A DNA stretch of 63,703 nt, the filler included, from Lenisia limosa (lineage: Eukaryota > Protista > Breviatea): NCBI GenBank assembly GCA_001655205.1. It is 9 parts of 9 records of this genome, joined end to end, with 100 filler letters (N's around TTAATTAATTAA, not from the genome) between each part and the next. Parts side by side here need not be neighbours in the genome. Positions count along the whole stretch, not along the records: positions 21,750 to 52,134 come from LPNZ01007841.1; 8 more parts are not named here. The stretch is one strand, 5' to 3'. Both the position numbers and the translations under genes were made by a program. Below are positions 7,796 to 43,672 of the stretch, piece by piece (the stretch's first letter is position 1; each line of letters begins with the position of its first letter). Under the pieces are notes generated by a model. That model had not been told where the DNA came from and did not search any database. It saw nothing but the letters and a program-made list of their open reading frames with translations.

Positions 7796-10700
7796 GGAGT
7801 AATTGAATGCGGATAATATTGGGGTGTTTGTTGTTGATTGTCCTTACAGATGTAACTCCCCACAGACAGGTCCACCATGGCTGTTCTTCTCGCTGTATCC
7901 CACAGAAGCTACGATTTACTCTGATTCCCATATGGTGTCTACAATTACGCAGTTCACTACTAACGCTATGCTGTTCTGCCCTAAAGGTGGGTGGTAGGTA
8001 AGACCCGTATCCCCTCCCCCAAAAAAGTCTTTCATATCATACTAAATATTTCTGTATGTATGTATGTGGGGAGGGGGGGTAGAGATATTCCCGTTTTACT
8101 GGAATGGTTTGTTTTTTAAAAAAACACCATATTTTTACCCCCCCCCCCCCNNNNNNNNNNNNNNNNNNNNNNNNNNNNNNNNNNNNNNNNNNNNNNNNNN
8201 NNNNNNNNNNNNNNNNNNNNNNNNNNNNNNNNNNNNNNAGCCTGTGAACCTGGCACGGAGTTTGTTGCTGGTGGACCAGAATACGATGGATGTGAGGAGG
8301 GGTGATAGTTAATGGAGTTATTTTGTTGATGAAAGAACCAACTGTCCAGTTTTCAATACGGGGAGTTGCCAACCTTGTATTGCCGGGACGTATTCACCCG
8401 GCACTGTTGGCGGCGTTGTCGGTACTTGTACTAATTGCCAAGCGAATGAGTAGGTTACTGTACAGATTTCTATTTATGCTATCTTATTTGATCCAATCTG
8501 TTACTAAACTTATCTCACCCCCCCTTTTTATAATAGAAAAGAAGTATTTTACTCCCCCTCCCCACCAGGTACTCTCCTGATGCGGCGCCGTCATGTCTGA
8601 AATGCACTGAGGGACGCACCCCGGGTGTGGGCTCGGCCGTCTGTGCGGCCTCCATCTGCGGACAGGGTGCCGAATGGTCGGGCACGCAGTGCAACATCTG
8701 TCAAGCTGGTAGGTCATATCCATTTTGTCCAAATCCGGTGTCTAGCATATACAGCCAGAGGTCTAATACAAACTTTTTGTTTTTGTATATCATTTACATA
8801 GTATACTATATCCCGTGTTACTCTACAGGAACCTTTGCCACCGGGCTCTCTGGAGGCCTGACATGCGAAGCCTGTGCGGAGGGACTTGCTTCCGATGTTG
8901 GAGCTAATGAATGTCTGCCGTGTGCGGCAGGACAAGAGCTCTACCTTGCTGGTGGGGAGGGGGACAGGACAGTCTTTTTCTGCTCTCTGTACTTTGTTAG
9001 ATACAGCTTCTGAAGTTCAGTCTCAAATTTTCCCGCATTACTCCCCCCGCAGCAACGTGTCGAGACTGCAGCATCGGATATTATAGTCCTAGTGCGGGTT
9101 CTGCATGTGTGGAGTGTCCTGTTGGGCAGATATGCCCGGAGGCTCGCACAGAGACACCAAGCAGCTGTCCCGCTGGACAATACGCCAAAACTGGAGGTTT
9201 CTGTAGGTCCTGTTCTAATTTGCTTAATGTTATGCTTCTTCGACAAATGATGTGAACTGTTTGATTGCTACCTGTGTAACCAGTTATCAACACACAATTC
9301 ATTAACACGCAGCTTGCGCGGTATGCGGCCTTGGTACGTATTCCGAAGTAGATTCGTCATCGTGTTCGCAATGCCCTTCAGGTATGAGGGACGAATGGGT
9401 GTGTTCGGTATCAATTTTGTTTTGCCAAATAGATAAGTAGAAACATTATTAGTATTGCTCATGAATTGCATCGGTATTGTTGACGGCTTATCTAGATCAT
9501 CTTATTGTCAGAACTGGCCATTGATCGAATTAGGTAGTTACTCAAGCACAGAAGAAAGCTCTCAGTGCATCGAATGCCCAGCTGGGCAGTATAGCAGTTC
9601 TGTTGGTGCGACAGAGTGTTCGGACTGCCCTTACCCTGAGAACTGCCTTGGTGGCATGGAGTGCGGTGATGGCTACACTGGACGTGGGGGGGGGGGTNNN
9701 NNNNNNNNNNNNNNNNNNNNNNNNNNNNNNNNNNNNNNNNNNNNNNNNNNNNNNNNNNNNNNNNNNNNNNNNNNNNNNNNTTAGTTCCTTTAAAACTTAT
9801 TTCTAGCCCTTTGTGGAAAATGTGACACTGGATACTACAAACTGAGCAGTAGCTGCAACAAGTGTCCGGATATCCCCTGGAACATTATCATTCTTGGTAG
9901 GGACTTTTTTTGACAGTTGACTCGTTATTTCCTTCTAACAATGTAGTTATCCTGGCAATTTTGGTCCTCATCATCGTAATGAAACTTGGCCTCTCACCCA
10001 CGACCCTCACGAGAATCAAACTCCTTGTTGATCACTTCCAAACTCTGGCAATCACAATTAGTATTGCTGTCGAATGGTGGGGTTTTGCAAGACTCATCTC
10101 CTTAGGCCCTCAATGTTTACCAAGTTCCTAAGTTATCTTCAACTCTTTGTCCTCGACTCTTCTATAGCATCCCCCGAATGTTTTGTATCGGATTTCAGCT
10201 GGTTGGTTTCTCTTGAATACGATTTACTTTGATGTAACCTGTTCTTAACCACCAAGGTATAAGTCATTGGCGATGAACCTTCTCCTCCCATTTGTTGTTG
10301 TCTTAATAGCCTACACCCTGGCTAAAATTCTGAAGATCTCCTCTTGGTTTGCCCTTTCTCGCTTCTGCTTCCTTTTACAATTTTCACTTAGTACTAATTG
10401 TATTTATCTTGCATGTCTAACTTCTTTCTTTGGTGTTCACGATTCAGGTGTATTATGCGGAAAGTCAAACCCGGAATCGAAAAAGAGGTACGATGCTTGA
10501 TCCATCCATATCCTCCATTACTGAGGAACCCGACAAGCATTGTTGTATCTAAGGTCTGACAAAATAGCAAGTTGAGATTCTTCGAGACAAAAGCAAGGCC
10601 AATGAGTTCCGCCGTGCCAATGTTCGGCGTATCACGCTTTTCCTTCTCACTACTCTCTACATCCCTATTGCTACGAAGGTAGGAGACAAGAGTGTAGCTG

Positions 10701-21761: not shown

Positions 21762-24700
21762 AGTGAGAGTGAAGAGACGAGAATTGGCATTGGACGAGAA
21801 GAAGAAGAAAGTATATTTTTTATTTATTATTATTAGACCAAGGCATATTGATTTTACAGCCTCAGATCATGACATGACTGTTTGTTCCGCTGTTCCGCTT
21901 ATTCCCCTCTGTTCTGTTTGTGCTTCTGTAGTAAAATGGAATTAACTTTTTTTTTTTAGATATTTAAAAGGAAGGTATTTCACACAAGGCATTTCACAGA
22001 TCTGAAGAATGACAAACACAGTCAAATTGAAGCTGCCTACCTCCCTGCATGGTGATTGCAAGTCTGTGAGTTCAGTGTATAAAAACACATGCGTGTCAGT
22101 CATATTTTATTTTCCTCGGGCTATCTGCATCTTCTGTGCTTTTCACAACCATTGTTCTAGTCAAAATGTCGTGTTATGTTGTTATGTTGGTTCTGCACTG
22201 GAGTATCCACCAGCCATTTTTATTGTGTAACACGTTAGGAGGAGTGCCACTCTACTCAAGCGCCTCACAAGCCGATATGAGGACAAATACAGGAAGAAAG
22301 ACGTCTTGTGTAGCGACTGCTTAGACAAGAGCGTTTTTTGTGACAGCTTCATTGGTGGAGTAGTGAGGGGGATAGCGACTGCTTAGACAAGAGCGTTTTT
22401 TGTGACATCTTCATTGGTGGAGTAGTACGGGGTGTGGGGGTTGTAAGTTTGACATTTCCGCTACCATTTCAGTGTCAAAACTGCAGTGGAGAAAAGCACG
22501 TCACCATTAATAGATCGGAAGATAGTGCTGCTACTTGGTTGGAGATGTGGAGGTAATATATGTTAATTAATTGTTTAATCTCGTGTTTTATTTTTTATTG
22601 TGAACTTTGGGGAATAGCTTGTTATTTAAAACGCTGCCCATAGTAGTTCATCTTTTACATTTGTAGGGAACTCGCTGTTTTAAAAAAATCCAAGAACAAG
22701 AAGTAAGCAATAATGAGTCTTTTGTGGATTAGCAAGTCATTTAAGATGATATTGATAAGGATGCGATGTGATATGTAATATTATTTATTTTGTCTTTTAT
22801 TGCTTCATAGATTTGCATCATTGATTTTGCAGGCAATCTGAAGTAAAGAAGGAAACCAAAAAGGAGAAGGAAACCCATCAAGCAATGAAGGAAGGGAAAG
22901 ATGAGTAAGCGTGTTCATTGGATAATTGTATGACAAGTGGAGCCCTGTTTCTTATTTCAGTGTAGACCAGATACCTCTCCCCCCAAGAAGCGTAAACCCA
23001 AAAAGTTCTCAAAGGCCAATGTTGTTCTCCGCGCTCGGAGCGACTCTGATGTCAGTGTCATCAAACACAAGCGCAAACAGACCTCCAAGGGTCTTCTACC
23101 TACTCCCACAGGGGACATTCGCACTGTTCGACAATCCAAGAACCCCTTAAAAGTCAACACCACTCTTCCAAGCCAGCAGAATGAAAGGTTTGAATGGTTT
23201 CAGTCTTTAGACCAATTGCGGATTTTTTACCGGTTTTTTATTTCGTTTATCCACATTGCGTGGTGACTTACTATTTTCATTCATTTTGATGCTCTTTGTG
23301 TGTTTTTAGTAAGCGCAATGGGTGTCCAGATATCCTCATCAGATAATGTATCTTTTGCGTAGTTACCACCTTAGTCCTCCTATTTCCGATTTCACGGAAG
23401 GCCCCTGTGAAGTGCCAATTCGTTCGTTTCCGAAGACTCGACGCTACATTTCCCCTTCAGGTCGGATGTTATGTCATTTGTGGACTGCTGCTCTTTTGTT
23501 TCCAATGGCCTACGAATCTGATTATTACAGGCTTCAAGCTGTGTCACAAGAAAATGCACCATTCAGGTTGGAAAAGGTGCTCCTTTACACACACACTCAC
23601 CGAAATGAAGGTGAGAGTAAAGTTCGGGCTACTTTGCCACTTACTCCATAATGATTAGTGATTTGCCACTACTATAACTATTAATACTGTGCTTGTATTC
23701 TGATAACAACAGGCCTGGAACAAGGAAGGTGTACGCCTGGGGATCTTGGAGCATTCCAAATGCGCAATACAAGAAAAGAAGCAGGAGGACCTTCTCAAGT
23801 CTGGAAAGCTGGTGATGACGTCATGGTTGGTGGGGCAATGGTAATCTCATATTACGCTTTCGTCAATGCTTGTTAAGTAATACGTTTAGGGATTTTCAGA
23901 AGAGTAAACAAACAAAACCCAATCATTGCAACAAGGTATCGCAGAACCAACGGGTCCATGATTTCGCTCATTTAGCTGTGTATGACCCTCTAGAACACAA
24001 CACCAGCCAAGCCAATCAACGTTGTTCCAAGCCCCCCAGAACCCCTGCCCGTTGATGTAGGTTCAGTCTTGTACATGTTTTCCATAGGCCTTTGAGTGCA
24101 CGATTCGCGAAATTACATGTGTGTGTGTGTGTTTACATCACCTGCGCCATCTGCTACTTTCGAATATTGTTAATCCCTACATTACTGAGTCATTTCAAAA
24201 TATTATTCTCCATGAACATCTGAACATTTAGCTTCTGTTACTCTTCATGAACATTTAGCTTCTGTTACTCTTCATGAACATTTAGCTTCTGTTACTCTCC
24301 ATGAACATCCCATGAACATTTAGCTTCTGTTACTCTCCTCCCGCAATGCTGACACGACCATCAGCAAAAAGAAAAAGAAGCTGCGTAAAACTTGTGGGTT
24401 TTCAATAATACATGGGTTTAGTTACATATTCGTATAAGTTGCTAAAATCCCTTATCTCTGCGTGATGGTATGGACGGCTTCGGCCAGATACACCATCAGT
24501 TGCATTCCATTCTTCTTGGTACTATAAATTTGATCAAAAAGTACATTTGCCAATATTATCTCTTGTAACGCGCTTTCTAGCGGCCACTGGTCAATACGAT
24601 AACATCTGCAAAACGTGGGAGTATAGGCTGATGGCCAATATTGAAGAAGCCATTGAAGAGGCAGACTGGGACTATGAGCTCCAAACGGTTGGGTGTGGCT

Positions 24701-27700
24701 GACACTTCTTGAATGCCCCGTTTTGTTAGACTCATTTAACAATTTCTCATATCAAAGGGACTAACCAAGGAGAATTACATTAGAAAAACGCAGAACGCTT
24801 CATTCCATGAAGAGAGCAAACTTGTTGGGGGGTTATTTTGGTCCAAGAAGGGTTGCTCTGTATGGGTTTTCCTTTTTGTTGTCATTAATACCCTAGAATG
24901 AACTGATAAAAAGCGAATTCTCTTACACTAATGTGACTCTGCGCGCTGACGCAACAAAGGGCTACAATAGAGTTCTCTTTGAGGTGGATGGATTTATAAT
25001 GCCAAGCAAATGATTATTTTCACCTCTTTCCGGCGTCACGGTATAGCTTGCAGAAGACGATGTGATGCCTTACAGCTGCCGGCCCTCAATCCTCCATGGG
25101 GATAGAGTTGAAATCACTACCGAAGGTTCCTCAATGGTGGGTGGACTTTCCCTATTTCAAAAGATGAGATAATTCAAGAGTCTGTATTATCCATACATTC
25201 TACAGCCTAAAGAGTTGAGCTTCTTAGGTTTTTATATCTACTCAAAAATGATTTCACGTGTTTTTACTGACTCAAAAGACGGTACCTGGCTGCATAGACT
25301 TCATCTTCAAACGAAACGTCTTCATCAAACCATTCAGAAGCCTGTTTCCTGAAGGTGGGTGGTTTGTGCTCAAAAGTCTCGAAATTCTATTGGTGTTATT
25401 ATTTGGCATTTCTAGAAGATGGAAATTCACAACAGATTGTATTTGATACTGTAGACGACACCAGCTATTCGATCAAAATAAAGTGTGATGACAAACATTT
25501 CAAAGTGAGTAGGTTTATCTTGATATGATGAATGGGGTTGTAGTTTGAATTTTGTTTTGGAGCCGCTATTTCTTCAATTAATTATTATTAAACACCATCG
25601 TCTGTCCTCTCAATGCTATAAGGCCAACCGTAGTGCTCTGAACAACTGCGCTCCTTATGTCTTGTTCCCCTCTCCGCAGTCCCAATCCAAGGTTAAACCC
25701 GTCAAGGAACTCACAAACAATGACTGGGTGGGTGGTTCCAAGCAGAGTAATAAATATTTATGATTAGCAAACATATGTTTTGTTTCCTGACGATCCAGTT
25801 TTTCCACGGTCTCAACCAAGAGCAAAGAAACAGTGTCCACACCTTGTTGATGTCTGGGCAAAATGGTCTGATGGTAGCATATTAATGCACCCAATCATTT
25901 AAAACTTTGTGTTCACAGTGAGGACGGCTTCGGCCAGAGACAGTCCCATTCACCGAAGTACGAATATAACACATTAGGCAACCCACTTGCACCTGTGGTG
26001 GTTACAGGGTCTTTTGGAACCGGAAAGACGCTGATCGGCATGGAAGCTGTTAAAATGGTGGGGTGGACAAGATATATATTATATATATCATATATATAAC
26101 CTTTTAAAATTTGATGATTTACGTTGATTGAGACCAAAGTGGATCCCTGCTCATTGCTTCCAACAAAGGCTCACAATTCAGAGTTTGAATCACATCCGAA
26201 ACCCTCGTGTACTTGTTTGCACTTACAATAATTCCACCGCTGACAAGTGAGTGTTGTTATTTAGCCAAATTTTCTTCTTTGTTTGACCTTACATTCTGGA
26301 CATGCATTGGTCATCTCTTAGGTATGTAAACGAGCTGAATTTAGAAGAGAAGCAGTTATTACGTCTCTATTCTAAGAGGTGAGAACGTTTTGTCTTTAAA
26401 TATTGACAACCTTAATGTCATGGTACCAACAGCTTTGGCAACTGCAAAAACCTTTATCAAATACATAAATCAACTTCCTCTTATTTTTCCTCACCAGCTG
26501 TTCTCACTATAATTCAGCAAAGTGAGGCTCGTTGACGAGAAGTATTGCTACTTTGACGCTCAGGGCGCCTGTGCTATTCCGCCTAAAATCGTGGGGTGGT
26601 GGTAAACGTGTTAGTCACTACTACATAATAAAATATCATTTCCGAATCATTTGCCTTGTAATCATATTGGTTACCTCATTGCTCATATTACAGCTGTTGG
26701 TTGATGTTCCTGTTGTTGTCTGTACCTTGAGCGTTTGTCACGACCTTTCACAGAATGGTGACTGGGGGTAGACCTTTCATGTTTAAATCTTTTTTTGTTC
26801 AAGCAATATTTGAACAAGATACATGTATATTTCTGGATATAATTGATATGTATGATATCTACCTATTCATATTATGGTGTATGAGGGGGTAAACTTATCA
26901 AGCGTTCAGCATTATTCACTTCCTCCAGACCTGGGCGGCCATTATGACGTAATTATTGTTGACGAGGCTGCATAATGTCTCGAAGCTGATGTTCACCATG
27001 CTCTCCAGTAGGAGGTCATGAGCACATGTTGCCCTAATAGATTCAATCGTATAGTATGACATAGTATTATGTCCAGAGTAAGACTCTTCAGTATGACCTA
27101 GTATTATGTTCAGAGTAAGACTCTAGGTTTGCCAGCCCTAGTTCTCGTATTCTGCTTCTTGGGGACCACAAACAGACGGTCCCAACACTCCAGTCAGGTG
27201 TGTCTTCGCTTCTTAACTCAAACTGTTACCGTTGTTTTCACACGCCCATCACCCTCGTAGAAGTGGCTGAAGGACTAGGGTATGGCAAGCCCATCATCTG
27301 TCGAATGGCGGACTTACCGTTCTACAGCAACTTCCCAAAATACTTCATTCATTTGGTTGGTTTATCCCGCATCCTGGTGGATTGACTTTCTTTGCATTTT
27401 CTGACTATTGAGGTTCGGAACTATCGAAGTGTTCCTGAGATTGTCTCCATGCAGTCCAAGCTGTTCTACTCCAACACTTTGGTGCCTCTTGTGGAGTCAA
27501 CCTACCTCAAAACTGTGGGGGGAGGTGACTTGACGTCTATTAAGCTAGACCTGAACCTCAAAGCAGAATTTCTGGACCCCCATATTTTGGTCTATTTTCA
27601 ACATAATGGGGGCTTGATAGTTGCCATCTTGTTTAGTTTTCTTTTTTGAAGTTCGGAATGTTTGAGAGCCCCAGATAGATTCACCTCATCTCAATTTAGA

Positions 27701-30700
27701 ACGTACAAGGATTCAAGAAGGACGTTTCATTTGCTGTTATTGCAACATATGTATGTGGGGCATTTTCATCCACCATTGCTTCCCATCTTTGATTGAAGGG
27801 TTATCTCAATATTTCACCATTGCTTCCCATCTTTGATTGAAGGGTTATTTCACATAATCATTGGGTTGGATGCTTTACTTTTCTTATCTTTGAATTGACC
27901 GGCTTAGGGAACAGATGTATGCCAAGGAACAGGATTTGCAAACTATCAAGAAGCCAGTGTTATGGCAGTGGGGATGCAAAGCAGGCAGTTGATAATGTCA
28001 TATTTTGCTTGATAATATATCTTAACTGTTCCAGAAATATGCCAAATCCTTGAGGGAGTGCATTGAAACTGATGACCCCGCTACCACCCCTCTCATGGTA
28101 TGTAGTTTTTTGTTTGACGAACGTATGTGATATCTCCGAAGCAATGAAAATTGCTGACGTATTATTTACACACTTCTCTGAGAGTATTATTCCGCAATAA
28201 GTGTCTTTTACCCTAACATATAAATACATAAAATAGAAAGGTAACTTCATCGAATGTGACCTATTCCCTTCACAACATAGTTTTAATATCTTGCATTGAT
28301 TTAATTCCCTCAGATCATTGCCCCCAACTTCCGTCAAGTGTCAGTCATCAAGGCCCAGCTTGAACTCATAGATCCGAACCATGATGTGAGCTTTAATGCG
28401 GTCCGTCCGTTCAACTGACATGGTCTCATGATGCTAAGTATCACTTTTTAGATTATGGTGGCCACTGTGAATGGAGTTCAAGGCCTTCAATCTCAGGTAT
28501 TTCAGGTCGTCCTCCATTGACTCTTTAGGTCGTAATGATCGCTACTACGAGATCTGGCAAAATGGCAAAGGAGCGAATTGAAAGAGACAAAACGTTGAAA
28601 ACTGGATTCCTCTCTAATGTCGGTTCTTGGGTTGTTCCTCTCAAATGTCGGTTCTTGGGTTGTTGACTTACATTGGTCCACAGATTCTATCACCTGTTAA
28701 CACCCTTCACACCCAGGCCAACAACTTCAACACTGCAGTGAGTCGAGCCAGGACCAGCGTTGTCGTTTTTGTTGAACAACAAGCTGCAAACGTTGCCGAT
28801 AGTTATTTCAAGGTGGGCTTGTGAGACTATCAAAAAAGTGGATATGACGTAGCATATGACTGAAAAATTAGGAGGGTTGAAAGTGGAGTCTGGGTATTTT
28901 TGCCTGACCGTACAGATATTTGTCGCTACCTGCTGTAAATCCCAGTTCTCTTCTGTGAAGCGAGTCCCTCGAATCACTCCCTTAATTCTTGGTACAAGGC
29001 CATCAATCCCTGATCTGAGACTCTTTTATCTCTTGAGCTCTTTTGCGTTGTATTCTTCTTTTTCTGTTTTCATTGTATTTTGTACCTCATGATTTTGAGT
29101 GATTTGAGAGTCTAACAGTTTTGTAGATACAGAACCCCTTTTGATTAAGCCTGAAACCACTCCCGAAATCCAATGCAATATCATTGCTGGCTACAGTGAA
29201 AAGCAGAGGGCAATCAAGGTATATATCTCTGTGAAATTAGTGAGTTCAGCGCAATAGTGACATTTTTCTGTGGAGACAAACTGTTTGCAGTTTCCCCTTT
29301 GCGTATTGTTATGGAGTCATATTAACATGCCAGGCGGATCCCTTGGAGCAAGTTACGCACAATCTGTCCAGTGTCTCCCTCAACAGCGTTCCTGAACGTT
29401 GGTGGTTTCTCATATCACTTTATTTCTATGATACAATCAGTTTTTTGAATAGTTGAGGCTTGAAATCGTAAACACAGGTATCTGATATTGCTACTTGTCA
29501 GTTATTGCGTAGGGAAGCCCTCGCCCGACATTGAGACTTTGGTCCGGTCCGAAGTACCGACTGAGAACAATGACAACAGAGAACTGGCTCTCGTTTGGGG
29601 GTTTTATGCCATTGTTCAGTTTGCAACCTTCAAGCCTCGTCTCTTATGAATAGGCAGCATTCACCCAAATGACCCTTGTAGCACTTAGGAGATATCAAAG
29701 ACAAGGGGCTGCACCTTGTCAAGGACGAAAATGCCTACGTGTCCACTTTGGCCAATTTCAAGCGTTTTGTTCCTTCGACCCCAGCGTTAGCTAAATTCTC
29801 TTGGTAGACAAAAATGCTCTTGATTGACAAAAATGCTCTTGATATACAAAATGCTCTTGATAGACAAAAATGCTCTTGATATAAAAGGGGATAACTTTAT
29901 AGGAACAAAATCTACCTCAGCGAAATTGACCTTGAGAAGACGTCGCTACAAATTGGGACGTACTCGCGAAAGAAAGACACACCAAAGAAGGTGTTTGTGA
30001 GTGGGCATATTTTGATATACGACTTTGACCCCCCCCCCCCNNNNNNNNNNNNNNNNNNNNNNNNNNNNNNNNNNNNNNNNNNNNNNNNNNNNNNNNNNNN
30101 NNNNNNNNNNNNNNNNNNNNNNNNNNNNNNNNNNGCTCTTTGGAAAGAAGGTGCAATGGACGGCTCGGTTGTGCTCTTCCATGTGACTGACGAGAACGTT
30201 TGCAGGTTGCTGATGGTCACGTTGTTGGGCCTCTTGTGACGCTGGTGGTCATGTTGTTGGGCCTCTTATGATGCTGATGGTCACGTTGTTGGGCCTTGTT
30301 GTGACGCTTACAGAAGGCTGTTATTGACTATCGTGTGCAATTTGAGGAGGCGTTGAGACCTGCTGGAGATTGCGCCGGAAGATCATACATTTCCCGCTGG
30401 ACCAACAACAAATTGTTCGCCCCTATCAACCCAAGGGTACGGGCGGTCAATTTAAGGGTACGGGCGGTCAATTTAAGGGTATGTGGGCGGTCAATTTAAG
30501 GGTATGTGGGCGGTCAATTTAAGGGTGTGTGGGCGGTCAATTTAAGGGTACGGGCGGTCATTTTACCTTTTGTGATATGCTCTTGTCTGATCCCCAAAGG
30601 CGCCCTTGCTTGCTCTGGACTATGGCCAGCGTTTGAACGCGGGAGTGCTGAGTGTGCTACGTGTCACTAAGTGGAACTCCGGTCACAACCACCCGGCTGC

Positions 30701-33700
30701 GTTGGTTTGAGGGCTTCATAGTGTAAAGGGCATAACCCCTGAAGCTGCCATGGCTACCATGAGATACCCCTTTATTGCCCCTTAGATATCTGAGACTGTG
30801 AACGAGCCAGAGAAGATCCCTTGGGGCGACTGGGTGAACATGGACATTGCTTCCACCGGCGCTACGGAGGCTTCAGTCAAAGTGGGCTTGGAGGCGATCT
30901 TTTTATCACGGTTCATTGCGGTTGTGGATCTCTTCACAACCCTGCTCTCCATTTGACCCTCTAGTTGCAATCTGAGGCGGAGAGCTTGGTCAGTCTTCTT
31001 GAGTTCGACGCGGATTCATCCATTTCCCATGTACGCGTCTCGTGTTCTTACTACCTGAATGGCGCATTTTAGCATGATTGAGCCCTCACCCCTTAGCTGC
31101 ACCCTGACGTGACTTACTATGCAATTGACCCGGAGAATTGCACCGATCGCGACGACGCAATTGCATACGTAGGATAGGACCAGACCAGAATCCTAAGATC
31201 CTAAGTCAGATTTTGGGGTCTGAACGGGAAGAATGTTTTTCCAATTTTGCATCTTTCGGCTTGCTTAAGGTGCTAAAAGGTTAGAAGAGTTATTTAGATA
31301 CGGGTTAGGTGATTGACAACATTTAAATGCAGAGAGAAAAGAAAAAGAAGGGTGATCACTAAAGAAAAAGAGAAGTATTATTCTTTTTTTAAAAGCCACT
31401 CCGAGGCTCGATCCCTCGACCTCTAGTTCAAAAACCAACAAAAGTCCATCTGGTGTTCATTTGACCACTAAAAAAAATGGCGCGCAAAAAATCTGCTTTT
31501 GGCCCGCTTTGTCGGAGTTCGGGGTTTTTTAAATGGAATTCCGGGGTCCTTAAGTTAGATTCTTGTCTGTTCCTAACGTTGGACTGAACAACATTTCCAT
31601 GCCACATGGAGGGCATGCTCTGATTGTGTAGTTCAGGGACTCGAAGGGAGAGGAGTATGTTTCCGTGGCTGTAACGGACGTGGCTGGAGCCCTGGTGGAG
31701 TGGTCGGATATAGACATTTTCGTGGGGCGGAAACACATTCATCAAAGGCTTTTGGACGGATGGAAATCACTTTATGAAGAATCATCTAACCAATTCTAGG
31801 CCATGAAGCAACAAGCCTCGCTGTACCCCCCTTGCGCTGATAAGATCCAAATGCTGCCTGCCGCCTTGACTGACTACTTGTCTATTAGCAGTAGCACGCC
31901 ATGTATTGTGGTATGCTCCACTATCTAATAACATGGTATTGTCAGTGTGTATGGACAGCTTCAGCGAGATGCAAGACACCTCTTTTCCATTTCCTGAAAA
32001 TATGACCAGACATGTCTATCACACTACAGATGGTACTTAATTTGAGAACCGGCAAGGTGTCATTCAGTTCAGCGAAGGTGACCGTCTCTCAAATTTCCTA
32101 TCAAAAGGTATGTAGTTGGTGAAGTATCTTTCGATGTTCTCTTCGGGTGTTTTGTGCTCGGATTTTGCATCCCAAAATCCCATAAATCCCTTTCACCCGT
32201 TCAGCTTCATGATGACCTTCAAAGCTGCGAGCAATATGCTGAGGATCTCCACAGAGCGGCCAAGATCCTGCTGCAGAAAAGGCGGCAATCACCCAACCCT
32301 GGAATGCCGACCCCTAATACCAAATTCGAGTGTTCTTTACTGGTACGGTAGAGGTAGTTGATGTTTTTCTTTGCAGTCCTCCCCTTGATCCCATCAGAAC
32401 AATACCCTTAACAACGACCATGCCTGGGACTTCCCCGTTTGTCACGCCATTGTGGAGCACTTTATGATTGCTGCCAACCTTGCTGCAGGAGAGGTCTTCG
32501 ATGACAGTGATGTTGAGGCTATCTACAGGGTCCAAAACAAACCACAATCGGTTGGTGCATCGTCGTGTCATATAATGTCCTTGCTCCTGGATCTGTTTCA
32601 CACCCGCAGGAAAGTCAAGAGATTCTTGCGAAGTACGAAGAGCTGATACACAGAGACGACCTAAACACGTCCACTCTCGAACATCTGCGGTTCAATAAAG
32701 AAATGGCAAAAGTGAGTGCTTGTCTTATCTTTTTCGACAGCAGATATATTATTACCAGTGTTCCCTAGCTATGCCGCCACAATCATTTTCATGGCTTTAG
32801 TTCGGCTTTTATCATTATCTTTAGTTCAGCTTTTATCATTATCAAAAATTCACTTCCTTTATAACCTTTCAGTACCAAACACAGTCATTCTTCACGGTCA
32901 CTCCCGGCTTTCATTTCTCTATTGGAGGTCAGTCGCCCTATGCTACGTGGACGTCTCCCCTCAGACGCTACACCGACATCGTCAATATGCGCATTCTGAA
33001 GTGCTTCACTGATGTGAGCGTGGTCTACCCATGTCGCCTCCATGTAGCCTGATTTCACCCCCATTTAGCCTGATTTGACCTCCATGTAGCTTGAAAGTCC
33101 CCTGTTATATGAGGGCGGAGCACCAATGCTTGTCGCCTTAGCCAACTGCACTCTAGCCGGTCTTACAGCTGTGACGAGGGGGGTTACTCCTATTAACATT
33201 TTGCTGACAATTGTAGTGCGAAACAGACCTCAGAGGGGACCTGTGCGGACGAATTATGTCGAAAATGACGGACCTTGTCGTCCTTCCCTCGACCGTTGTA
33301 GGCATCAGCGGCAGCTCAATGGATGTTAGTGGGGTTTGAGTAGCCATCTCACTAGCACTCCAAGCTCATCTATTATGCGACTGGCGTTACCTCTCAGATG
33401 ATTTCTGAATCACGGCCCGGCTTCACAAACGCTCTCAGTAACATTGCGTTCCGTGACCTTCGAAGTGACGGGTTCGGACAGGAGGAGGTGTGGCGATTTA
33501 ATTGACCGTGAATGTGTTCCTTTTTACCCCCGGACTCGTTAGACGTTATGCTTGTCTCACGTAAACAGGTTGATATTGGCAACTCTGTGATGTTCCGTGT
33601 AAATAGCGACAAAATTATCCAAGGCACCAGAATGCTGCACAATCCGATACCAGTCTCAAAGCGAACACTCGAAATCGGAAGCACGGCTGTTGTTCAAATG

Positions 33701-36700
33701 AATGCAATGGTTGGTAATTCTGTCATATGCATATTCATTAATAGGATGTACCTGTTTCCATTTGACCCCTTCGCCAGCGCAACAAGATCCGACAGCAAAC
33801 AGAGGCGTCTGTTCAGCTTCTGGAGGTCACCCCGGGGGCTGTATTCTGTCTTGATCACTGCAAAGTGGGGGGCTGTATTCTGTCTTGATCACTGCAATGT
33901 GGGGGGCTGTATTCTGTCTTGATCACTGCAAAGTGGGGGGCTGTATTTGATCAACCTATCAGTACTTTGGTATCGACATACTGGTTTCATTTTTAGCTTC
34001 CCAGCTTGTTTCTGATTTTGGTATTTCTGGTTTCTTCCACTCTTTTTGTGTTATAATATCAAGGATCCTGTATCAGCCTTCCTGCAAGCACCATTTCCCA
34101 AAGAGCGCCCAGTGTATGACTCGGTTGAGGCCTGGGCGGCTCCGTGCAGAGCCGTTGTGACCGTTGGGGGGGGGGGTCAGCGTGATAACGACAATACAGG
34201 AACTGATCAAAGGGAATCCTAAGGTGAGCATCACGACCAGGATTTGAGAGGTTATACTCTTGTTTGACTGACATCCTCAGGCAGTTGCTGCGTATGAAGC
34301 TGTTCAGACCAACCTGTGCTACTCTTTTCGGGTCAAAGCTTTAGTCAAGATGCAAAGCTTCACGCCAAACGAGATTGACTTCAAATTGAAGGTAAAAGAG
34401 GATGTACTAGTGAAACTTTCATGGAAAGGCATTTTTAATATTCATTTTAGAATGGACTGGGCCGTGACGCCTTTGTGTGTGTCAGAATTCCGAGAGACAA
34501 AGTTGATATCAGCGAAGTTGGTCATCATGCTCCTTCTTTATTTCACCATTGAATCCTGTTAGTTGTATCGTTATCTCTCAAATACCCTTTACACACTTAC
34601 CCATGCTTTCAGTAACATACTCTATGTTCACGCATTAGGACGTTGGGCTTGGGGATTCGGGTATGGATGTGTACCATGGCATGATGGATGGCACCACAAT
34701 CACTTGTGTCACCTCATTGTCGCACCCAATGGACTTCTTGGCAAATGCCAAATTCAAACAATACAAAACAGCCGTAGTGGAGGTATTCCCCAGAAGCGTG
34801 GGAGCTGAGCGCATGTTCAATTTGATTGACGCTCTGACTGTATGTTGGATTAGGATCTATACATAGTATAATATGATATGAAACATGTTGATTATTTAGA
34901 GTGGATCTGTCCAAAACAAGTTTATTGTCAATAGTCTGGCTCTTGGCAAGGATACTCTCGAAACACCGCATTCGGGTTGTGATATCAAATGTTTGCCAGC
35001 TGGCTTGGAGCCTCTATTCAAGTGTATCAAATCTGACACACCCAGACAGCAAACTTGACCAGTACCAACAGAAAGCCGTGTCTGCATGCCTCATGAACCC
35101 TGTTACAATGATCTGGGGTCCTCCCGGTATGTTCACTCTCTTCTGTTCCTTTCCACTTTCCATCTCAAATAATCTGTTTCCATAGATGTCTTCGATCATT
35201 TCCAACTTATTTGGTCTTTTCACGTCTTAGGCACAGGTAAAACCACAACTGGAGTAGACGCAGCGTTCAAATTACTGCAAACCTTCCCCTCTGTCAATGA
35301 TGAGAGTGGCAACAGAGTCACAAGGTCTGACGGTTGTCTTCTTCGGACATTTTGTTGTGAAAGACCTCTTTTTTTTTTGTTTCTCTGGCTCCATAACAGA
35401 TATTTTATTTCATACTCTGATGTATTTTTCTTCACAGCCTTCTTTGTTTCTTTATGATGGTGTGCAGATAATGTTCAAACAGGTAAAACTAGGGGGACAA
35501 TTTTATTTCTCCCATGGGTCAATCCTGTAATGATGGGAAAAATAATGAAAAAGGGACACTTTACTTGTTTTGTGAAGTTCATGTAAATTACGCTTACAGT
35601 GTTCTTTACGCCGCTACAAGCAACAAAGCTGTTGATGTTGTTGCAGAACGAATCAAAAAGCGCTTTCCAAATGTGTCTGTGGGGCTTGTAATACAAGGGT
35701 TGCTCAGTTGAAAGGCTCTTTTCTGACTTTTTTAGTTTGGCAGTTCGCATGTATAGTACCAGAATCGAGCGAAACGATTTACCGCAAATGGATTTACACT
35801 TTGAAAAACATGCTGGACGAGACTTTGTATGTGGCTGTTGCCAAGTAATATATTTTTGATATGAAAACTATGTGAAACTACATGGCCTTATACATCTAGG
35901 ATAATGAAACACCTCCAACTGTACCTGAAAACTTTGACGAAATAGCCCTTCACAAATTGATCCGCGATCCATGTAGATGCCCTCAATATGCAACCAAAAT
36001 CAAAAAGTACGAAGTTTCTTTTCTGAAAAAGTCACATTTTCAGCTTTGAAGATATGGAAGAGATGAACAAAGCGACTTTCCTTGAATACAAAACGGTGAT
36101 TTACGAAGCCGAACAGGAAAGTAGGCTTTGAAGGGGAGCTGTATGTGGTTAGTATACCGAGAATACACTTGAAGCTGAGGGCTTCACTTCGGTATGTTAA
36201 AAGACCGGTAATATATCGATAATTTTCGAGGATTCATGGAGAAATTCAGTCTTTTTTGAAACGAAGTGAAGCCCTACTTGAAGTTGAGGCGAATGGATAC
36301 CTGTCAACTTTAGCCATCTATGTCTGACATTTCTGCTTTAGCCGTCTTTGACGCAGTTGATGTCTGATATTTCAGTCTTGGGCAGTTACGACCTTGTTCT
36401 AGTTACATGTAATTTGAGTGCCAGCAAGAAAATGCCCTCCACATTCAATTGCGTAATTGTTGATGAGGCTGGTAATAGGTTAGTGATAGGGCTGTCTTTT
36501 TGCCATATTTAAAGACTTCCAATAACTGATGTAGTATTGACGCTGATATAATGATGCNNNNNNNNNNNNNNNNNNNNNNNNNNNNNNNNNNNNNNNNNNN
36601 NNNNNNNNNNNGCAATTAAAAATAAGGTTGTATCTCTCCAAAGCCGTCCACAACATCACACTGATATACCCAATCATTTGCCTTACAACTCTGTGCACAC

Positions 36701-38553
36701 AGCTTTCTACGTATGTGCCTCAGTTAGTAATATAGTAATAGTACCTAGAGATGTGTATTGTGATTTGACCAGATTCGACCTATGATTGTTTCGACATATT
36801 GTGACCTTCAAGGCTGTTCTCATTGGTGATCCGAAGCAGCTGCCCCCAGTAATTCTGTTCGAAACCCCAGAGGTTGGTACACGGATCCTGAACTTGTTAT
36901 TTAGAGGAATCCGCTGAATTCGGTATTGGTCCCAATGCATTATTCTTACTGATAATCATCAGGTTAAGAAAGCAGGAGAATGCACCTTGTTTGAGCGCCA
37001 CCTTGGCAACAATCACGTTGTCATGCTTCAGATGCAGGTTGGCTGGCAATCAAAACAAAGTGGTCCTTAAGTTATCGATTGTAGTACCGCATGCATCCTG
37101 AAATATGTGAATTTCCTTCGAGAACATTCTACGACAACAAACTTCTCTCGCATCGGTGTACCAAACAAAACAACAGGTGAATGAAATGCATTTAAGTGGC
37201 TTGGAGATATCGATAAATCCTTGCTGTGTTATTTTTGCCACCTTTTGGTTTAATGTATATATAGCAAGCCTTTGGGTTTATTTGGTCCCCACGCATGTCT
37301 GAAATAGAGTTTGTACATGCAAAGTAGCTCTGCATCTTTCTGCCACAATTGCGCGCTGTGCTCGTATTGTCGTAACCCCCCCCCCCAGAGCCCTTGCAGT
37401 TGAAGGGATGAGCAAGTGTCGTCGTTTGTTTGTGGACTGCACTGGACAGGCTGTACACAAGTCGGTAGGCATAATGTGGAATTCCCATTGCTTCTGAGAC
37501 TAAGATTGTAGGACAAGATTGGAGATGCTAAGGCTAATTTGATGCTAGAGTCCTGAATATCATATCTAACATATCATATCGTATAATATATTATATCGTT
37601 ATCTTCATATTTGACATATAAATGAAGCTGCTATTTTGACTCAGCAAACTTACAATGCAGTCAGCTCAGAATCCGCTTGAAATCCTCGCTATCCAAAAAG
37701 AAATAACCTCAGTCTGCAACCTTGCCGAGGCAGAACTGGCTGAAAAAGTGGGGGCTTGTTTCCTCACGGAAAACTCTGACCACCCTCCATTGAAGATCCA
37801 CCACAGGGTTCTGTGATAACTCGGCATTTATGTTTACCGATGTAGTATCTCAGTGAAATTCTGAAGAGCGGTGTTCGAGGAGAGGACATCTTCATCATCA
37901 CACCTTATAGAGCCCAGGTTTGCTCGTATCGGAATGTTTGAAAATTACTGCCGATTGTGATATATGCTCATAGAATAGAAGGATAGAATCACTCCCTTTG
38001 CAGGTTGAACTCCTGAAGCTTGTGACTCAGGGAGTGTGTGACGCCTACAAAACTTCGGTTGGCTCTCTGGATCCAATCCACTCTTTTTGTTAGTTTCTGC
38101 AACCCAAGGTTTTAATCCAAGATAGGTCCACATTGGCACAGTCCATACGGCACAGGGCAGCGAAGCGGCCTTCGTGATAATGTCCCTTGTCCGGAGCGAG
38201 AAAGGCAACCTCGGCTTTATTGAGAACGGTTGGGTGGATAGCAAGAGAAATGAATAATGGTTGCTTTGTTGATCTGATCATTTAGATCACATGACGAATG
38301 TTGCATTGACCCGTTCCAAGGATGGCCTTATTGTGGTAGGGCTAGGGGGCGAGTAATAGTATACCATACCATATCTGATAGCATATGCTATAATATGACT
38401 TCACCCCACAAAGATACATGTACTTAGGCCATCTTGAGGATCGTAATGTGTCACACACTGACAACATAGATCGGTCGAAGAGACGCAGTGGTTCATTACA
38501 CCACATGGAAGAAGTTCATAGGGGACTGTCACGACAAGGGGCACTACCGCTAA
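21762..38553 (+). CDS. HELZ2 (PRIC285)-like protein: CCCH-like Zn finger, SF1 (UPF1-like) helicase 1, RNB (RNase II/R) domain, SF1 helicase 2; 5' end at contig edge; one in-frame TAA
   Basis: Many short GT-AG exons. ZF-like FKLCHKKMHHSGWKRCSFTHTLTEMK/AW (23531-23610). Helicase 1: LNQEQRNSV, VVTGSFGTGKT (26007-26030), VLVCTYNNSTAD, IIVDEAA*CLE, RILLLGDHKQ, NYRSVPEIV, ATVNGVQG, GFLSN/ANNFNTAVSRAR. RNB: AIDPENCTDRDDAI (31097-31168), VSVAVTDVA, SLYPPCADKIQMLP, IVEHFMIAAN, FHFSIGGQSPYATWTSPLRRYTDIVNMRIL. Helicase 2: LDQYQQKAV, MIWGPPG/TGKT, LYAATSNKAVD, VIVDEA, LIGDPKQLPP, YRMHPEICEFPSRTFY, IITPYRAQ, GTVHTAQGSE, NVALTRSK, ...WKKFIGDCHDKGHYR* (TAA 38551-38553). Confidence 0.88.
24225..24336. repeat. 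~27-bp intronic tandem repeat (catgaacatttagcttctgttactct)
   Basis: 4-5 adjacent copies visible. Confidence 0.85.
24445..24495 (+). repeat. Family C repeat 3' end
   Basis: gcgtgatggtatggacggcttcggccagatacacc. Confidence 0.7.
30432..30566. repeat. 21-23 bp tandem repeat (aagggtacgggcggtcaattt) starting at a splice donor
   Basis: About six copies; the first overlaps the end of the ...FAPINPR exon. Confidence 0.9.
31395..31481 (-). pseudogene. Degenerate tRNA-like sequence in HELZ2-like intron
   Basis: Minus strand: 7-bp acceptor GCCATTT/GAGTGGC directly after a 5-bp T-arm CGAGG-GATCGAG-CCTCG, then a T run. D and anticodon arms are irregular, so no isotype is assigned. Confidence 0.35.
33835..33945. 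repeat. 33-bp tandem repeat including exon end and donor (ggggctgtattctgtcttgatcactgcaaagt)
   Basis: Three full copies plus a partial one. Confidence 0.9.
36177..36276. mobile_element. Family A hAT-type MITE
   Basis: TIRs agggcttcacttcg / cgaagtgaagcccta; flanks cttgaagc / cttgaagt. Confidence 0.85.
36626..36700 (-). repeat. Family C interspersed repeat (reverse)
   Basis: ggttgtatctctccaaagccgtccac...cccaatcatttgccttacaactctgtgcac is the reverse complement of the 16477 and 5749 copies. Confidence 0.75.
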
Positions 38554-39076
38554 AGCAACTCACGTGGAATGGTAGATGTTTTTTGGTGTTTTATTATTGT
38601 TTCTATTATTTTGAGTGTAAGATTGTTAGGTTTAGATTATCGGTTTTGGGTAATATTCGGGATTCCCATAATGTAAATATGGTAATTCCAACGCTTTCAC
38701 AAGAAACCCGAGTCGATGTGCTGTAGTGTTATAAGTCAATTTATCAGCTTGGTACTGGTTTGGTATGATTTCTTGAGGTTTCGCGAACTCCATGCCTTCG
38801 AAACTCGGCGGAGGAATTATGCCCGGTGCGTACTGGGAGAACGTTTGAAGCCGAGTCCAAAGTCTTGCCAAAGTCCAAAGGTCCAAAGCACCCAAACACC
38901 CCGCTAAAATTGAAATAAATACGTTGTAAATATTTAATTACAATCATCTCACAGCAATCTCATAATATCTCAGGAAGGAGAGCTTGCGGTTCGGTAATCA
39001 GTGGGCTTCCGATTTAAGCCCTGAGTTTGTATTCCGACCCTTATTTATTCAAAACCAAAGATAGCTTGAGTTTGCA

Positions 39077-42000
39077 GGGCTGACGGTATCCTTTTGCGAC
39101 ATGCCAGGGGCTCTGGAGTCCCTAGGGGGCATTGAAAACCTCTCTGCGTTCCCTGTTGCCTCTCTTCTTGGTTTCGATCCTCTGAAGACTGCCTTACAGG
39201 CCATATTTGAAGCCCTCGCCCTTCAGGTATGTTTCTTACATTACCATATTTTTTTACATTACAAGCCCGTTTTGCATGCTGAGTGGCATTAACAAGAAAA
39301 AAACATCCTTTAATCAGCATGAATGTGTTTAATCACGTCTGGCTGACTTATCACAACCCCTAAAATATCAAGCCTTATGATCTGCTTTATCATTTCTATT
39401 CCCTCATTCTACCCATACTCCAGTTTCTGCTGTCATAGTAACTATTACCTCACAATAACCTAGTTTATGCTCCCCCATACCCTCGTGTGTCTTACCTTTG
39501 CTGTTGTTTTGATGGATGTTGTTACGAGTTTATCATTACAAACCTTCTCGTTAATTCTGGTCAAGTCTTTACATGTGGGCTCAATAGAGTTGATTTGTTA
39601 CCGGTTTATCGTTTGTTTCATACCTTTTCCTTTTTTTTATCTCGCTCTCTCTTCACTCCCCCCCTCCAGAACAAGAAGAACACAGTGCTGCAGAATGAGC
39701 TGAACGAGCTGCGCGACCGGCCCTCTGAATCCGCCGCTCTTAGAGAAAAGGTGCGTAATTGGGGGTGATGTACCTAGCGCGCGGACCCCTGCGTCTGAGG
39801 GGATAGTCAGTAGTTGTTTTGTTTTTGTACGTACATGGTAATGGTGATATTTACTGATGTAGGTGGTGGCATTGGAGGCCTTACAGGACCAGTTGAGTGA
39901 TAGAGTGACGCATATGAACACTGTGGGAGGGATGTCCCTCTTCCTGCTCCCATTCTACTAATCCACTCCGTTTGTCTATTAAAAGAATGAATAATTAAAA
40001 GAATGAATGTTACAATCCGTATTAATGGCGTTGACGATTCTGTAGGCGTTAACAAGCCGTATTCAGGGCTTAGAGAACCGAGCAGGCCAGTTGGCGGATG
40101 AATCAGCCCAGATCAAGTGGGTCATCTTTGTAGACTTGTTTGAATGAGTTGACTGGAATAGGCGAGCCACAGACTCGTGTGAAGAGCGAATATCCAAGTG
40201 AGTGTACTCGCATAACCATTTTCACTTCCAACCAAACTTGACTTGTTGTCACCTTGGCTCTACCTCCTTACCCCTCCTGCAGGTTGGAGTCAGCTCTTCA
40301 CGCCATCCCTTCTGCAGAGACAATCAGAGAAGAAAGTGGGTCCTGGGGTGGGGGGGGGGGGGACCTGNNNNNNNNNNNNNNNNNNNNNNNNNNNNNNNNN
40401 NNNNNNNNNNNNNNNNNNNNNNNNNNNNNNNNNNNNNNNNNNNNNNNNNNNNNNNNNTTGCCGTGTTGCCGTGTTGCCATTGTGATTGGAGGCGTTAAGG
40501 ACTGTTCTGTTTTAGTCGACCATCATGAGAGTTGTCACTGACAGTGGCAGTGGAGAGCATCGCTTCAACCGCGGGCCGGGCCTTGCAGCAGTCGCGCCAA
40601 GCCAAAGATGGCGTTGATGGGCTAGCAAGGGAAATGGCTGACATGCGTATTGAGCTAAGGTGGGTTCACCCACCATGTGGACAATTAAGTTGTTATATCG
40701 TGGATGTATTGAGTGTTGTTATATCGTGTATGTTCCATTCATTGCATTCAGACAGTCAGACGAAGCTGCCATTCATGCAAACACTGCCGTTGAGGAAGTG
40801 AAGGGGGGGGGGACATGTCAGGAGGAAAGAGCTGGCATGACGATACGTTAACGTCTTTAGGTCAGACAGTCGCTTTCGCAACTCTCCAACAAGCATAATG
40901 GGCCGACTGACAGATCACACGAAAGACAACCTGACAGGATACCTATTGCGCCCCCTGTTCCAAGGTACATTTCGATACATTTTGAATTTTAAAAAATAAT
41001 CACTGTCATACATTCTGGGTCTTTCAATGCGAACAGTATCCATGAATGCTAGATTTTCTGTTTACCCTCTTAGACCGCCTCCTACATCAGGAAGTGGCCG
41101 TGTGGTCAACGTATTGGTATGACTCATTTACGCATTTCTTGATAAGTGCTTTTGTGTCATTTTGGACTCAATGTTATAATAGTCATCATCGCTACTTTGG
41201 GTGGGCGCTGTGCTAACATTTCCAGACTGGGCCTTCTTCTGAGGCTATTGATGCGCTCAAATTGGCGCATTCCACACATGAGGAGCTGTCGGTTTGTTTG
41301 GGTTCAGTCTTCTCAGCAAATGACTCATTATTGACAGGACTTGTCAGAGAGGGTACTGGTCAACGAAACTTCTGTAGCACGACAGCAGCTTGCTATTGAT
41401 AGCTTGGCCACCCAGGTTTGGAGTCACAAAATCCGATTCACCAATAAGTACTGCCTCTAGTCCAGGCATCTCTATCCCTTCCATGTCCGTTTTGACATCT
41501 CCATCCTGCAGGTTCAAGATATGCGCATGATGCAGCAACTAGCCCCGGCCGCCCAGCAGAACGTCACATTCCGACCCACGTCCGCGTCTCGCGCAAGATC
41601 GTCCACGCCACCACCACCAACTTCGCGTGGGTAAAATGGGGGACACCACCAACTTTGCGTGGGTAAAATGGGGGACACCACCAACTTTGCGTGGGCAAAA
41701 TGGGGGACACCAACTTTGCGTGGGTAAAATGGGGGGATATGATGGTGACTATGGGCAATAATCCTTTTTCTTCATTGGCTCTTTTTGGGCTTGCTCACTG
41801 CCCAGACCTCCCACCACCATCACCCCGGAAAGATGGGGCTCCTGACGAGGCTCTCACGACAGCGCGCAACGCCAATGAAATGTCCCGCGCCCTATTGTCC
41901 AGAATCCAGCGTCTGGAGGCTCGGAGTGATGCTGTCGTGGGGGGGCCATATTGAGGGGGAGTTGATANNNNNNNNNNNNNNNNNNNNNNNNNNNNNNNNN

Positions 42001-43672
42001 NNNNNNNNNNNNNNTTGGACTTATCACTTTGTTGAGCTTCCTTCCTTCTTGTTTTGTTTGACTCGTGGGCCTGAGATGAGTCAATTCATCCCCCCCCCCC
42101 CTCAGGTACCTGGTCTTGCCAAGACCTACTCTGGCGGCAGTGACGAAGAGGGTGTCGCCAAGTTGCGGAAGGACCTCGATACCGTGATGCGGAAATCGAC
42201 AACTCTGTCGGAAATGCTCCAGGTGTGGGGGGGCAACATCGTGTCGTCTCCGAGCCGTCGGCAGGTTTTACAGCTTTTATTGTTGAAAGTCGGCAGCTTT
42301 CACAGTTATTGTTGAAAGTCACGTTTCAGGACCATTCAGTGACCATTGATTCTGTTAATGATAAAATGAGCGAACTAAAGGGCCAAGTTCAAGATGTGGG
42401 GGGGAGAGGTTCAAGCTGTGGGGACTACTCTCCATTGTGGGTGTGTCACGACCCGCTTTTGTCCCCCTTCACCCCGTAGATGGAAAATCAGAAGCCAAAC
42501 CACTCTGTCACGGATCACCTCAGAGAACAGCTCGAAAACATCAGTACGCTCACCGAGTGAATATTCGATGTGTTCTTTTGCTTTTGACAACCTCCTATGC
42601 ATGTTTATCCCGCAGGCCTAGATATGGATGACGTTGAAAGAGCAGTCACACAGTTACAGGTAATGGGCTATTAGGTCACACAGTGGGGCTATTCAACGTA
42701 TTAGGAATTTCTCTCCTATTCCACAATTTCTCTTCTGAATAGAGGCTCTCCTATTCCACAATTTCTCTTTTCATGGAGGCAATACATAACTCACCCAGAA
42801 ACGGATGACAGCCGCAGCGTCAAAGAAGTCTGTTCAGAGGGTAGAAGAGTACCTATTGAGCACTAAAGAAGGCCCCTTAGCTGCTACTAAGAGGTTAGGT
42901 GCATCTTAACGATGATGTGGTTCACAACCCCCAGGTACCGCTGTATTTCATGTGGAAATGAGTCAAACATCGCGGGACAAAAGCCCTCATTCTACTCGCC
43001 ACAGTAGGCTGGGAACTTGGCTTGTTCTGTTTCATTAGTAATAACTTACAGCAGTACAATGGTTTGAAATTGCGTATAGTTTGATCACCCCCAGGGTGCC
43101 ACCATCCAACCCGCTGCCGCAGGTCTTCGATGCCTTGACAGGCAGCACTGCGGGAGGCGCAGACGTGCAGCTTGTTGGCCTTGACGGCAGGTCTTATCGC
43201 GGCCAAACGCCAAGTAGACGGTGCAGGGGCAAACGCCAAGTAGACAGTGCAGGGGCAAACGCCAAGTAGACGGTGTAGTGGCAAACGCCAAGTAGACGGT
43301 GCAGGGGCAAACGCCAAGTAGATGGTGTAGTGGGGTGAAGGGGGGGGGGGGGCNNNNNNNNNNNNNNNNNNNNNNNNNNNNNNNNNNNNNNNNNNNNNNN
43401 NNNNNNNNNNNNNNNNNNNNNNNNNNNNNNNNNNNNNNNNNNNNNNNNNNNNNNNNNNNNNNNNNNNNNTACTATACTTCCGCGTGATTTAGTTCATTTT
43501 CAGCTCAGATCAGCAAATATCATAATCCTCTAATCTGCAGCCTGCAATGATGGTCAAGCCTTTGACGTTTTAGGCCTCGAACGGCAGGTTCACATATGGG
43601 CGATATGTCGTTTGCTGGCGAGTCAGTGTACCAAACCCCTAGGAGGTTAGCAAGGAATGGCATTATGATCTA
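39077..43672 (+). CDS. QRICH2/DUF4795-like coiled-coil protein (cilium-associated family); start and stop approximate
   Basis: Coiled-coil exons (NTVLQNELNELRD, ALTSRIQGLENRAGQLADE, KLRKDLDTVMRK, DMDDVERAVTQLQ), then YRCISCGNE (~42935) and DVQLVGLDGRSYRG (~43165), matching the remembered C-x-S-C and GLDGxxYxG motifs of QRICH2-type C-termini. Confidence 0.65.
41625..41735. repeat. ~30-bp tandem repeat copying exon end and donor (caccaccaactttgcgtgggtaaaatggggga)
   Basis: Four copies visible. Confidence 0.9.
43200..43332. repeat. 26-bp tandem repeat copying exon end and donor (ggcaaacgccaagtagacggtgcagg)
   Basis: Five copies; the long ORFs here derive from the repeat. Confidence 0.9.

Follow-up and report, generated by a model that had tools for sequence, protein, structure and literature searches.

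A locus with HELZ2-like helicase-RNB-helicase domain order in an intron-dense, probably non-animal eukaryote

The locus described here lies at positions 21750-52134 of a window of 63,703 nucleotides (nt), i.e., the whole stretch of DNA under study, which joins parts of nine records of assembly GCA_001655205.1; this piece is an intron-rich eukaryotic scaffold with a GC content of 39-52%. Within 13 kb of its + strand, motifs I to VI of superfamily 1 (SF1) helicases occur twice, with a full RNB domain between the two sets (Table 1). The encoded product appears to be laid out as a divergent UPF1-like helicase (helicase 1, Hel1), cold-shock-like exons, an RNB 3'-5' exonuclease, a tail of approximately 260 amino acids (aa), and an intact UPF1-like helicase (helicase 2, Hel2); Hel1 lies directly upstream of the other elements, on the same strand, and is most likely part of the same gene. 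This domain order is that of HELZ2, an interferon-induced protein in which the unwinding of RNA is coupled to its 3'-5' decay and which holds RNA viruses and LINE-1 in check; to our knowledge, HELZ2 has been described in animals only. An initial annotation of this DNA had proposed a HELZ2-type fusion in a non-animal eukaryote; the domain order and a common mRNA for RNB and Hel2 bear this proposal out, the joining of Hel1 to RNB is supported by gene prediction only, and a non-animal host is likely rather than proven. On balance, we regard it as probable that the locus specifies a HELZ2-like RNA-degrading machine of a very intron-dense and probably non-animal eukaryote.

Exons were predicted with our own dynamic programming (DP) exon finder, which combines codon log-odds with splice matrices trained on RNA-confirmed exons; it recovered the RNA-confirmed region and was then anchored on motif peptides. 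The second version of the resulting gene model comprises 79 exons, all on the + strand, and encodes 2327 aa, with a median exon length of 87 nt and a median intron length of 93.5 nt. The model is uncertain at the N-terminus, at 35.8-36.3 kb, at the 3' end, and in the interval between Hel1 and RNB, and neither end is fixed, since the gene may begin near 22049 or before the start of the piece and may finish at 38356 or further downstream. Transcript evidence was drawn from two runs of one study, X1 (DNA-like, with a word share of 0.98-1.00) and X2 (poly(A) "metatranscriptomic" RNA), contigs from which were aligned onto 28500-34499. Spliced alignment of contigs revealed 13 joints, all of them GT..AG and on the + strand, and RNA contigs 8, 9, 10, and 11 support an exon chain that begins with a cold-shock-like exon and runs through RNB and the post-RNB tail. 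Specifically, contig 8 joins 30792-30881, 30965-31030, and 31097-31168 and carries 15 extra letters that match the first bases of the exon starting at 31632; contig 10 contains the TSPLRRY exon (32873-33013) and six more exons, to 34064; and contig 11 overlaps contig 10, passes via 34281-34391 into 34451, and continues for 520 nt past the aligned stretch, an extension that would pass Hel2 motif I (GPPGTGKT) under either exon model. The 17 exons in 30786-34391, four of whose introns were inferred from homology, form an open frame of 588 codons, and the 18th exon is in frame with them. The X2 word share over 31500-36500 was 0.23, and approximately 400 words are therefore needed beyond 34516; X2 depth over RNB-Hel2 was 3-12. 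Because contigs 10 and 11 overlap, the frame is open, and the X2 word share extends beyond the aligned exons, it is well supported that a single spliced poly(A) mRNA carries both RNB and Hel2. The continuous exon chain of the initial annotation is thus documented on spliced RNA from RNB to the start of Hel2, and its upstream part, from Hel1 to RNB, is suggested by splice signals and the gene-model score.

The RNB domain was identified by several comparisons. A hidden Markov model (HMM), constructed from 11 RNase II sequences of bacterial origin, matched residues 1208-1497 of the spliced model with 110.7 bits (E 3e-36), and this match spans HMM positions 196-516 of 645, i.e., the whole catalytic domain; Pfam RNB (PF00773) matched two exons, and the best PDB match of one RNB exon was E. 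coli RNase II. Both the DxxxxxDxDD motif and the arginine of TSPxRRY, which define membership in the RNB/RNase II family, are present, and the domain is predicted to be an active, catalytically complete 3'-5' exonuclease. When the 47-aa exon that carries motif IV was used to search a sequence library, everything retrieved was either bacterial RNase II or a spurious match to beta-propeller repeat proteins, and no long helicase-RNB protein was among the matches; a scan of JGI metagenomes yielded a single contig, which was rejected as bacterial RNase R (67% GC). With regard to Hel2, all seven of its motifs are intact, and its exons are collinear on Pfam AAA_11 (profile positions 1-26, 55-74, 188-223, and 241-255; summed approximately 72 bits) and on AAA_12 (24-52, 99-121, and 139-172; summed approximately 79 bits). 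The TAA at 38354-38356 closes the Hel2 frame unless the last donor is used.

Table 1. Features of the helicase-RNB-helicase locus; positions count along the whole window.
Feature	Position	Strand	Basis or remark
Predicted N-terminal exons	22049-25727	+	DP model, low confidence; Lys-rich, low-complexity
Cys-rich stretch	22239-22537	+	within predicted N-terminal exons
Hel1, UPF1-like SF1, ~16 exons	25799-28812	+	motifs read directly
Hel1 motif I, GSFGTGKT	~25995	+	
Hel1 motif Ia	26206	+	
Hel1 motif II, VIIVDEAA	26940-26972	+	
In-frame TAA in Hel1 motif II	26973-26975	+	sequence and model
Hel1 motif III, LLLGDHKQ	27149	+	
Hel1 motif IV	27413	+	
Hel1 motif V	28314 and 28452-28496	+	
32-nt GT..AG intron in Hel1 motif V	28497-28528	+	inferred from homology
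Hel1 motif VI, NTAVSRAR	28726	+	
Hel1-RNB interval	28813-30785	+	DP prediction; no X2 RNA
Predicted pieces like cold-shock domains	29682-29785 and 30041-30197	+	second acceptor inside gap 1
Assembly gap 1	30041-30134		true length 42 nt, including a C13 run then AG (predicted acceptor); NODE_553, flanks 100% identical
Further predicted interval exons	30314-30436 and 30600-30704	+	
RNA-supported chain, 18 exons	30786-34516	+	cold-shock-like exon 30786-30881, RNB, ~260-aa post-RNB tail
RNB catalytic domain	31097-33013	+	HMM and motifs
RNB motif I, IDPENCTDRDDA	31124-31159	+	four catalytic Asp all kept
RNB motif IV, TSPLRRY	32951-32971	+	
Hel2, UPF1-like SF1, intact	35046-38356	+	model and Pfam
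Hel2 motif I, split GPPG/TGKT	35126/35231	+	
Hel2 motif Ia	35601	+	
Hel2 motif II, VIVDEAG	36444	+	
Assembly gap 2	36558-36611		true length 56 nt; NODE_553, flanks 100% identical
Hel2 motif III, LIGDPKQLPPV	36813	+	
Hel2 motif IV, YRMHPEI	37085	+	
Hel2 motif V	37888 and 38138	+	
Hel2 motif VI, NVALTRSK	38297	+	

Continuity of the locus was assessed against an ungapped ENA contig, NODE_553 (21,588 nt, sample ERZ3820729), which was retrieved by exact look-up of an open reading frame (ORF) of 98 aa. NODE_553 is 100% identical to window positions 27142-41679 and spans all three N gaps in this range; because it bridges the gaps with identical flanks, the sequences on either side of them are collinear. 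Gap 1 is also crossed by a DNA contig of run X1, in which 42 letters separate the flanks. The sequence that fills gap 2 consists of the final codons (..PVIKAKER) and the GTAAGC donor of the Hel2 exon beginning at 36535, with the frame preserved, and this exon encodes residues between Hel2 motifs II and III. The second half of Hel1, RNB, and Hel2 are therefore adjacent in this second assembly too, which probably derives from the same sample, and hence rules out a scaffolding error and leaves a read error possible. The scaffold gaps at 30041, 40368, 43354, 44288, 48820, 49336, and 50958 are bordered by homopolymer runs of G or C; in the five gaps that were checked, the second assembly supplies 29-58 nt, and the number of Ns was too large in four of the five, the exception being gap 2 (54 Ns for 56 nt). 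An Rfam search of the piece gave no match.

Hel1 carries the same order of motifs as Hel2 and is more divergent; a blastp comparison of the two aligned 273 aa, in collinear order between motifs II and VI, at 24% identity (E 9e-13), and on this sequence evidence Hel1 is a paralogue of Hel2. One Hel1 exon gave a weak match to Pfam AAA_12, and per-exon Pfam and PDB searches of Hel1 were otherwise nearly blank; those made with the CSD-like exons and the N-terminus were likewise uninformative. Removal of the 32-nt intron in motif V fuses TVNGVQGLQSQ with VVMIATTRS. The initial annotation had described two full SF1 helicases, a description that holds for Hel2 and is qualified for Hel1 by the in-frame TAA; the exon concerned (26910-27007) translates as ...HYDVIIVDEAA-TAA-CLEADVHHAL, in phase with the exons on either side. 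This TAA occupies the position of the Gln in the DEAAQ of HELZ-type helicases, and no second defect was seen in Hel1. A single C-to-T change would account for it, since CAA is the main Gln codon, and the TAA is likely to represent a recent nonsense mutation, an early stage of decay, a polymorphism of which one allele was sequenced, or an erroneous base.

Human HELZ2 comprises zinc fingers, a Upf1-like helicase, two cold-shock domains (CSDs), RNB, an S1-like fold, and a second Upf1-like helicase, and its helicases and RNB cooperate in degrading structured RNA (PMC10516660); vertebrates as well as some corals and molluscs have HELZ2, which insects lack (PMC10516660). Full-text literature searches found no report of HELZ2 outside animals. 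The locus resembles HELZ2 in the order of helicase 1, cold-shock-like region, RNB, post-RNB tail, and helicase 2, in having an RNB predicted to be active and an intact second helicase, and in size (2327 aa in the model and 2649-2896 aa in human; PMC10516660). By contrast, no zinc fingers were detected here, Hel1 is broken by a stop codon, all four catalytic Asp are retained (in human HELZ2, Asn replaces the second; PMC10516660), RNB motif IV (YATWTSPLRRY) is closest to that of bacterial RNase II, and a non-animal host is probable. The CCCH-like finger of the initial annotation proved to be just a Cys-rich stretch with no Pfam match; a Pfam search with 10 N-terminal pieces found no family and no zinc finger, and the 5' end of the gene may lie outside the piece. 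With regard to simpler systems, the best sequence matches of the motif IV exon, to bacterial RNase II (E. coli Rnb), are approximately 50% identical, and the whole catalytic domain aligns with the RNase II HMM, whereas similarity to bacterial RNase II is low outside motif IV and RNB here is flanked by helicases on both sides and belongs to a eukaryotic gene with introns. DIS3 and DIS3L2 likewise have an RNB with cold-shock-like exons upstream; however, both lack helicase domains, motif IV of the locus is of the bacterial RNase II type (YATWTSP) rather than the DIS3 type, and neither was among the PDB matches of the motif IV exon at E < 0.01, whereas both RNase II and RNase R appeared there. 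With regard to the UPF1-like SF1 helicases UPF1, MOV10, and HELZ, their Pfam families AAA_11 and AAA_12 match Hel2 exon by exon and their motif order is that of Hel1, but these helicases have no RNB.

Whether Hel1 and RNB belong to a single gene has to be judged from the interval between them. We consider a single gene quite likely, because of the strength of the donor that follows Hel1, the absence of Met codons from the CSD-like exons, and a DP score above that of shuffled sequence. The donor after the last Hel1 exon (28812) is the top-scoring donor of the gene (7.3), and the best frame-compatible chain of exons through the interval scored 51.8, more than any of the dinucleotide shuffles (11.9 +/- 5.3); even for the most doubtful sub-interval, 28812-29682, the score was 15.6 compared to 4.1 +/- 2.0, a value reached by none of 100 shuffles. 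A strong exon (score 23.6) begins at the C13-AG acceptor within gap 1. The exon at 30786 has a good acceptor that coincides with an upstream stop, and its sole Met lies within a GDWV cold-shock-like strand, which aligns with the HGD-V strand of the RNase II cold-shock domain, so that RNB coding must begin upstream of 30786. The rival explanation, which we regard as somewhat unlikely, holds that two genes are adjacent, i.e., a HELZ-like helicase that ends just past 28812 and may be a decaying pseudogene, followed by a CSD-RNB-helicase gene transcribed separately from a promoter in 28.8-29.7 kb, in which case the three-domain "fusion" would be mere adjacency. Were the donor at 28812 skipped, the frame would indeed close three codons further on, in keeping with such an end; however, the candidate CSD exon at 29682, like the pair of candidate exons that precede it, is in a reading frame without Met, and neither AATAAA nor ATTAAA was found between 28812 and 29700.

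A number of observations weigh against a single HELZ2-like gene, and several of them are in keeping with two genes. X2 RNA is absent from the last exons of Hel1 and from the interval (depth 0 at 28500-30791; word share 0.00 at 28400-30040); however, a hole of similar size (31632-32460) occurs inside the proven transcript, and the silence of X2 is for this reason weak evidence either way. Hel1 bears the in-frame stop codon described above, and the interval exons had no Pfam match, their resemblance to the CSDs of RNase II being at motif level only (GDWV and MDGSVV strands). In addition, the putative S1 part after RNB gave no family match, the training set of the DP exon finder consisted of this gene alone, and, no relative of the same architecture having been retrieved, the only tie to HELZ2 is architectural.

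With regard to the host, the gene that converges on the helicase gene encodes an unusually divergent axonemal dynein heavy chain of inner-arm type (45000-52134, - strand; also found on another ERZ3820729 contig, 1-11500, + strand), with LQTVDLAPAW for the usual LQNCHLA-SW and a P-loop of GDEGCGRS. Three pieces of this dynein matched either dyneins of Chlamydomonas (8glv) or 9y6s, a chain annotated as "putative dynein heavy chain", with 26-32 bits (27-32 for Chlamydomonas), and the same pieces matched human or other animal (bovine, mouse) DNAH1, DNAH6, and DNAH10 with 20-25 bits; all of these scores are low. A word-index search of a 5.8-billion-sequence library with RNB and dynein pieces returned only the window's own ORF. 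The weak dynein scores against animals, together with an intron architecture unlike that of typical animals, make it very likely that the host is not an animal. As a speculation, a metamonad-like or some other deep-branching flagellate cultured together with bacteria would suit the type of sample, and the intron density and the short distance between branch point and 3' splice site brought a relative of Kipferlia or Carpediemonas to mind, an equally speculative idea. An animal host, such as a fast-evolving or early-branching invertebrate with an ordinary HELZ2 orthologue as in corals and molluscs, would fit the fact that the helicase-RNB-helicase architecture has so far been described in Metazoa only (PMC10516660), but it is improbable, as an animal dynein orthologue would be expected to score far higher than 20-25 bits, no protein or fragment in the library had enough 5-residue words in common with the RNB or dynein pieces, and the exons (median 87 nt), introns (median 94 nt, some of 32-46 nt), GTNNG donors, and branch-like element 9-14 nt from AG do not point to an animal.

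The genetic code of the host looks standard; in the RNA-confirmed coding sequence, CAA or CAG was found at 25 of 25 Gln positions, and none of the 588 codons is an in-frame stop. Decoding of TAA as Gln, as in codes of the ciliate or hexamitid type, would leave Hel1 intact and would suit both a TAA placed exactly at the HELZ-type Gln and CAA as the main Gln codon, but is very improbable given that neither TAA nor TAG occurs at any of those positions or codons and that a single, common nonsense substitution turns CAA into TAA. Public gene calls on the ERZ3820729 contigs read through TGA under a Mycoplasma-type code and thereby yield "proteins" of 80-274 aa in which exon and intron sequence is combined; we rejected a reassignment of TGA, these ORFs being an artefact of the ENA gene caller on eukaryotic DNA.

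By analogy with human HELZ2, a helicase of the encoded protein would unwind structured RNA and pass it to the exonuclease, and the outcome would be ATP-dependent decay of structured RNA, e.g., viral or transposon RNA. The sequenced allele, with its TAA, might give rise to a truncated N-terminal product and to an RNB-Hel2 protein from a downstream start, unless the TAA is a polymorphism or an error. The fullest form of this proposal, to which we give tentative credence only, is a single-chain helicase-RNB-helicase enzyme in a deep-branching non-animal eukaryote, in which the first helicase has been newly knocked out and the RNB-helicase half is still expressed. If this is true, the HELZ2 design either arose before animals or came together on two occasions; a protist gene of this layout would inform whether the coupled design is ancient or convergent and would provide a second, independent system for studying the cooperation of two 5'-3' helicases with a 3'-5' exonuclease.

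Finally, the locus offers a compact sample of an unusual genome, with exons of approximately 90 nt, dense introns, 17 phase-0 introns in succession, and splice-site sequence copied in tandem within introns. Introns range from 32 to 463 nt; their donors are of the GTNNG type, their pyrimidine tracts are weak, and at the 3' ends of most of them a branch-like YT[ACG]AY element precedes AG by 9-14 nt. All 17 consecutive introns in 30881-34451 (13 with RNA joints) are in phase 0, unlike the usual mix of phases; the exons between them are all multiples of 3 nt in length, and intron length is a multiple of 3 in 3 of the 17. Short tandem repeats with units of 17-37 nt are found in introns at 33834-33947, 33040-33094, 32795-32852, 27053-27124, 30441-30565, and 24221-24308, and often duplicate sequence adjacent to a splice site; at 33834-33947, an exon end and its donor are present in 3.4 copies. 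Such repeats hint at intron growth or gain through local duplication. Downstream of Hel2, at 39670-42500 (+ strand), exons with good splice scores encode a coiled coil, which may belong to a separate gene or to a C-terminal extension of the helicase gene.

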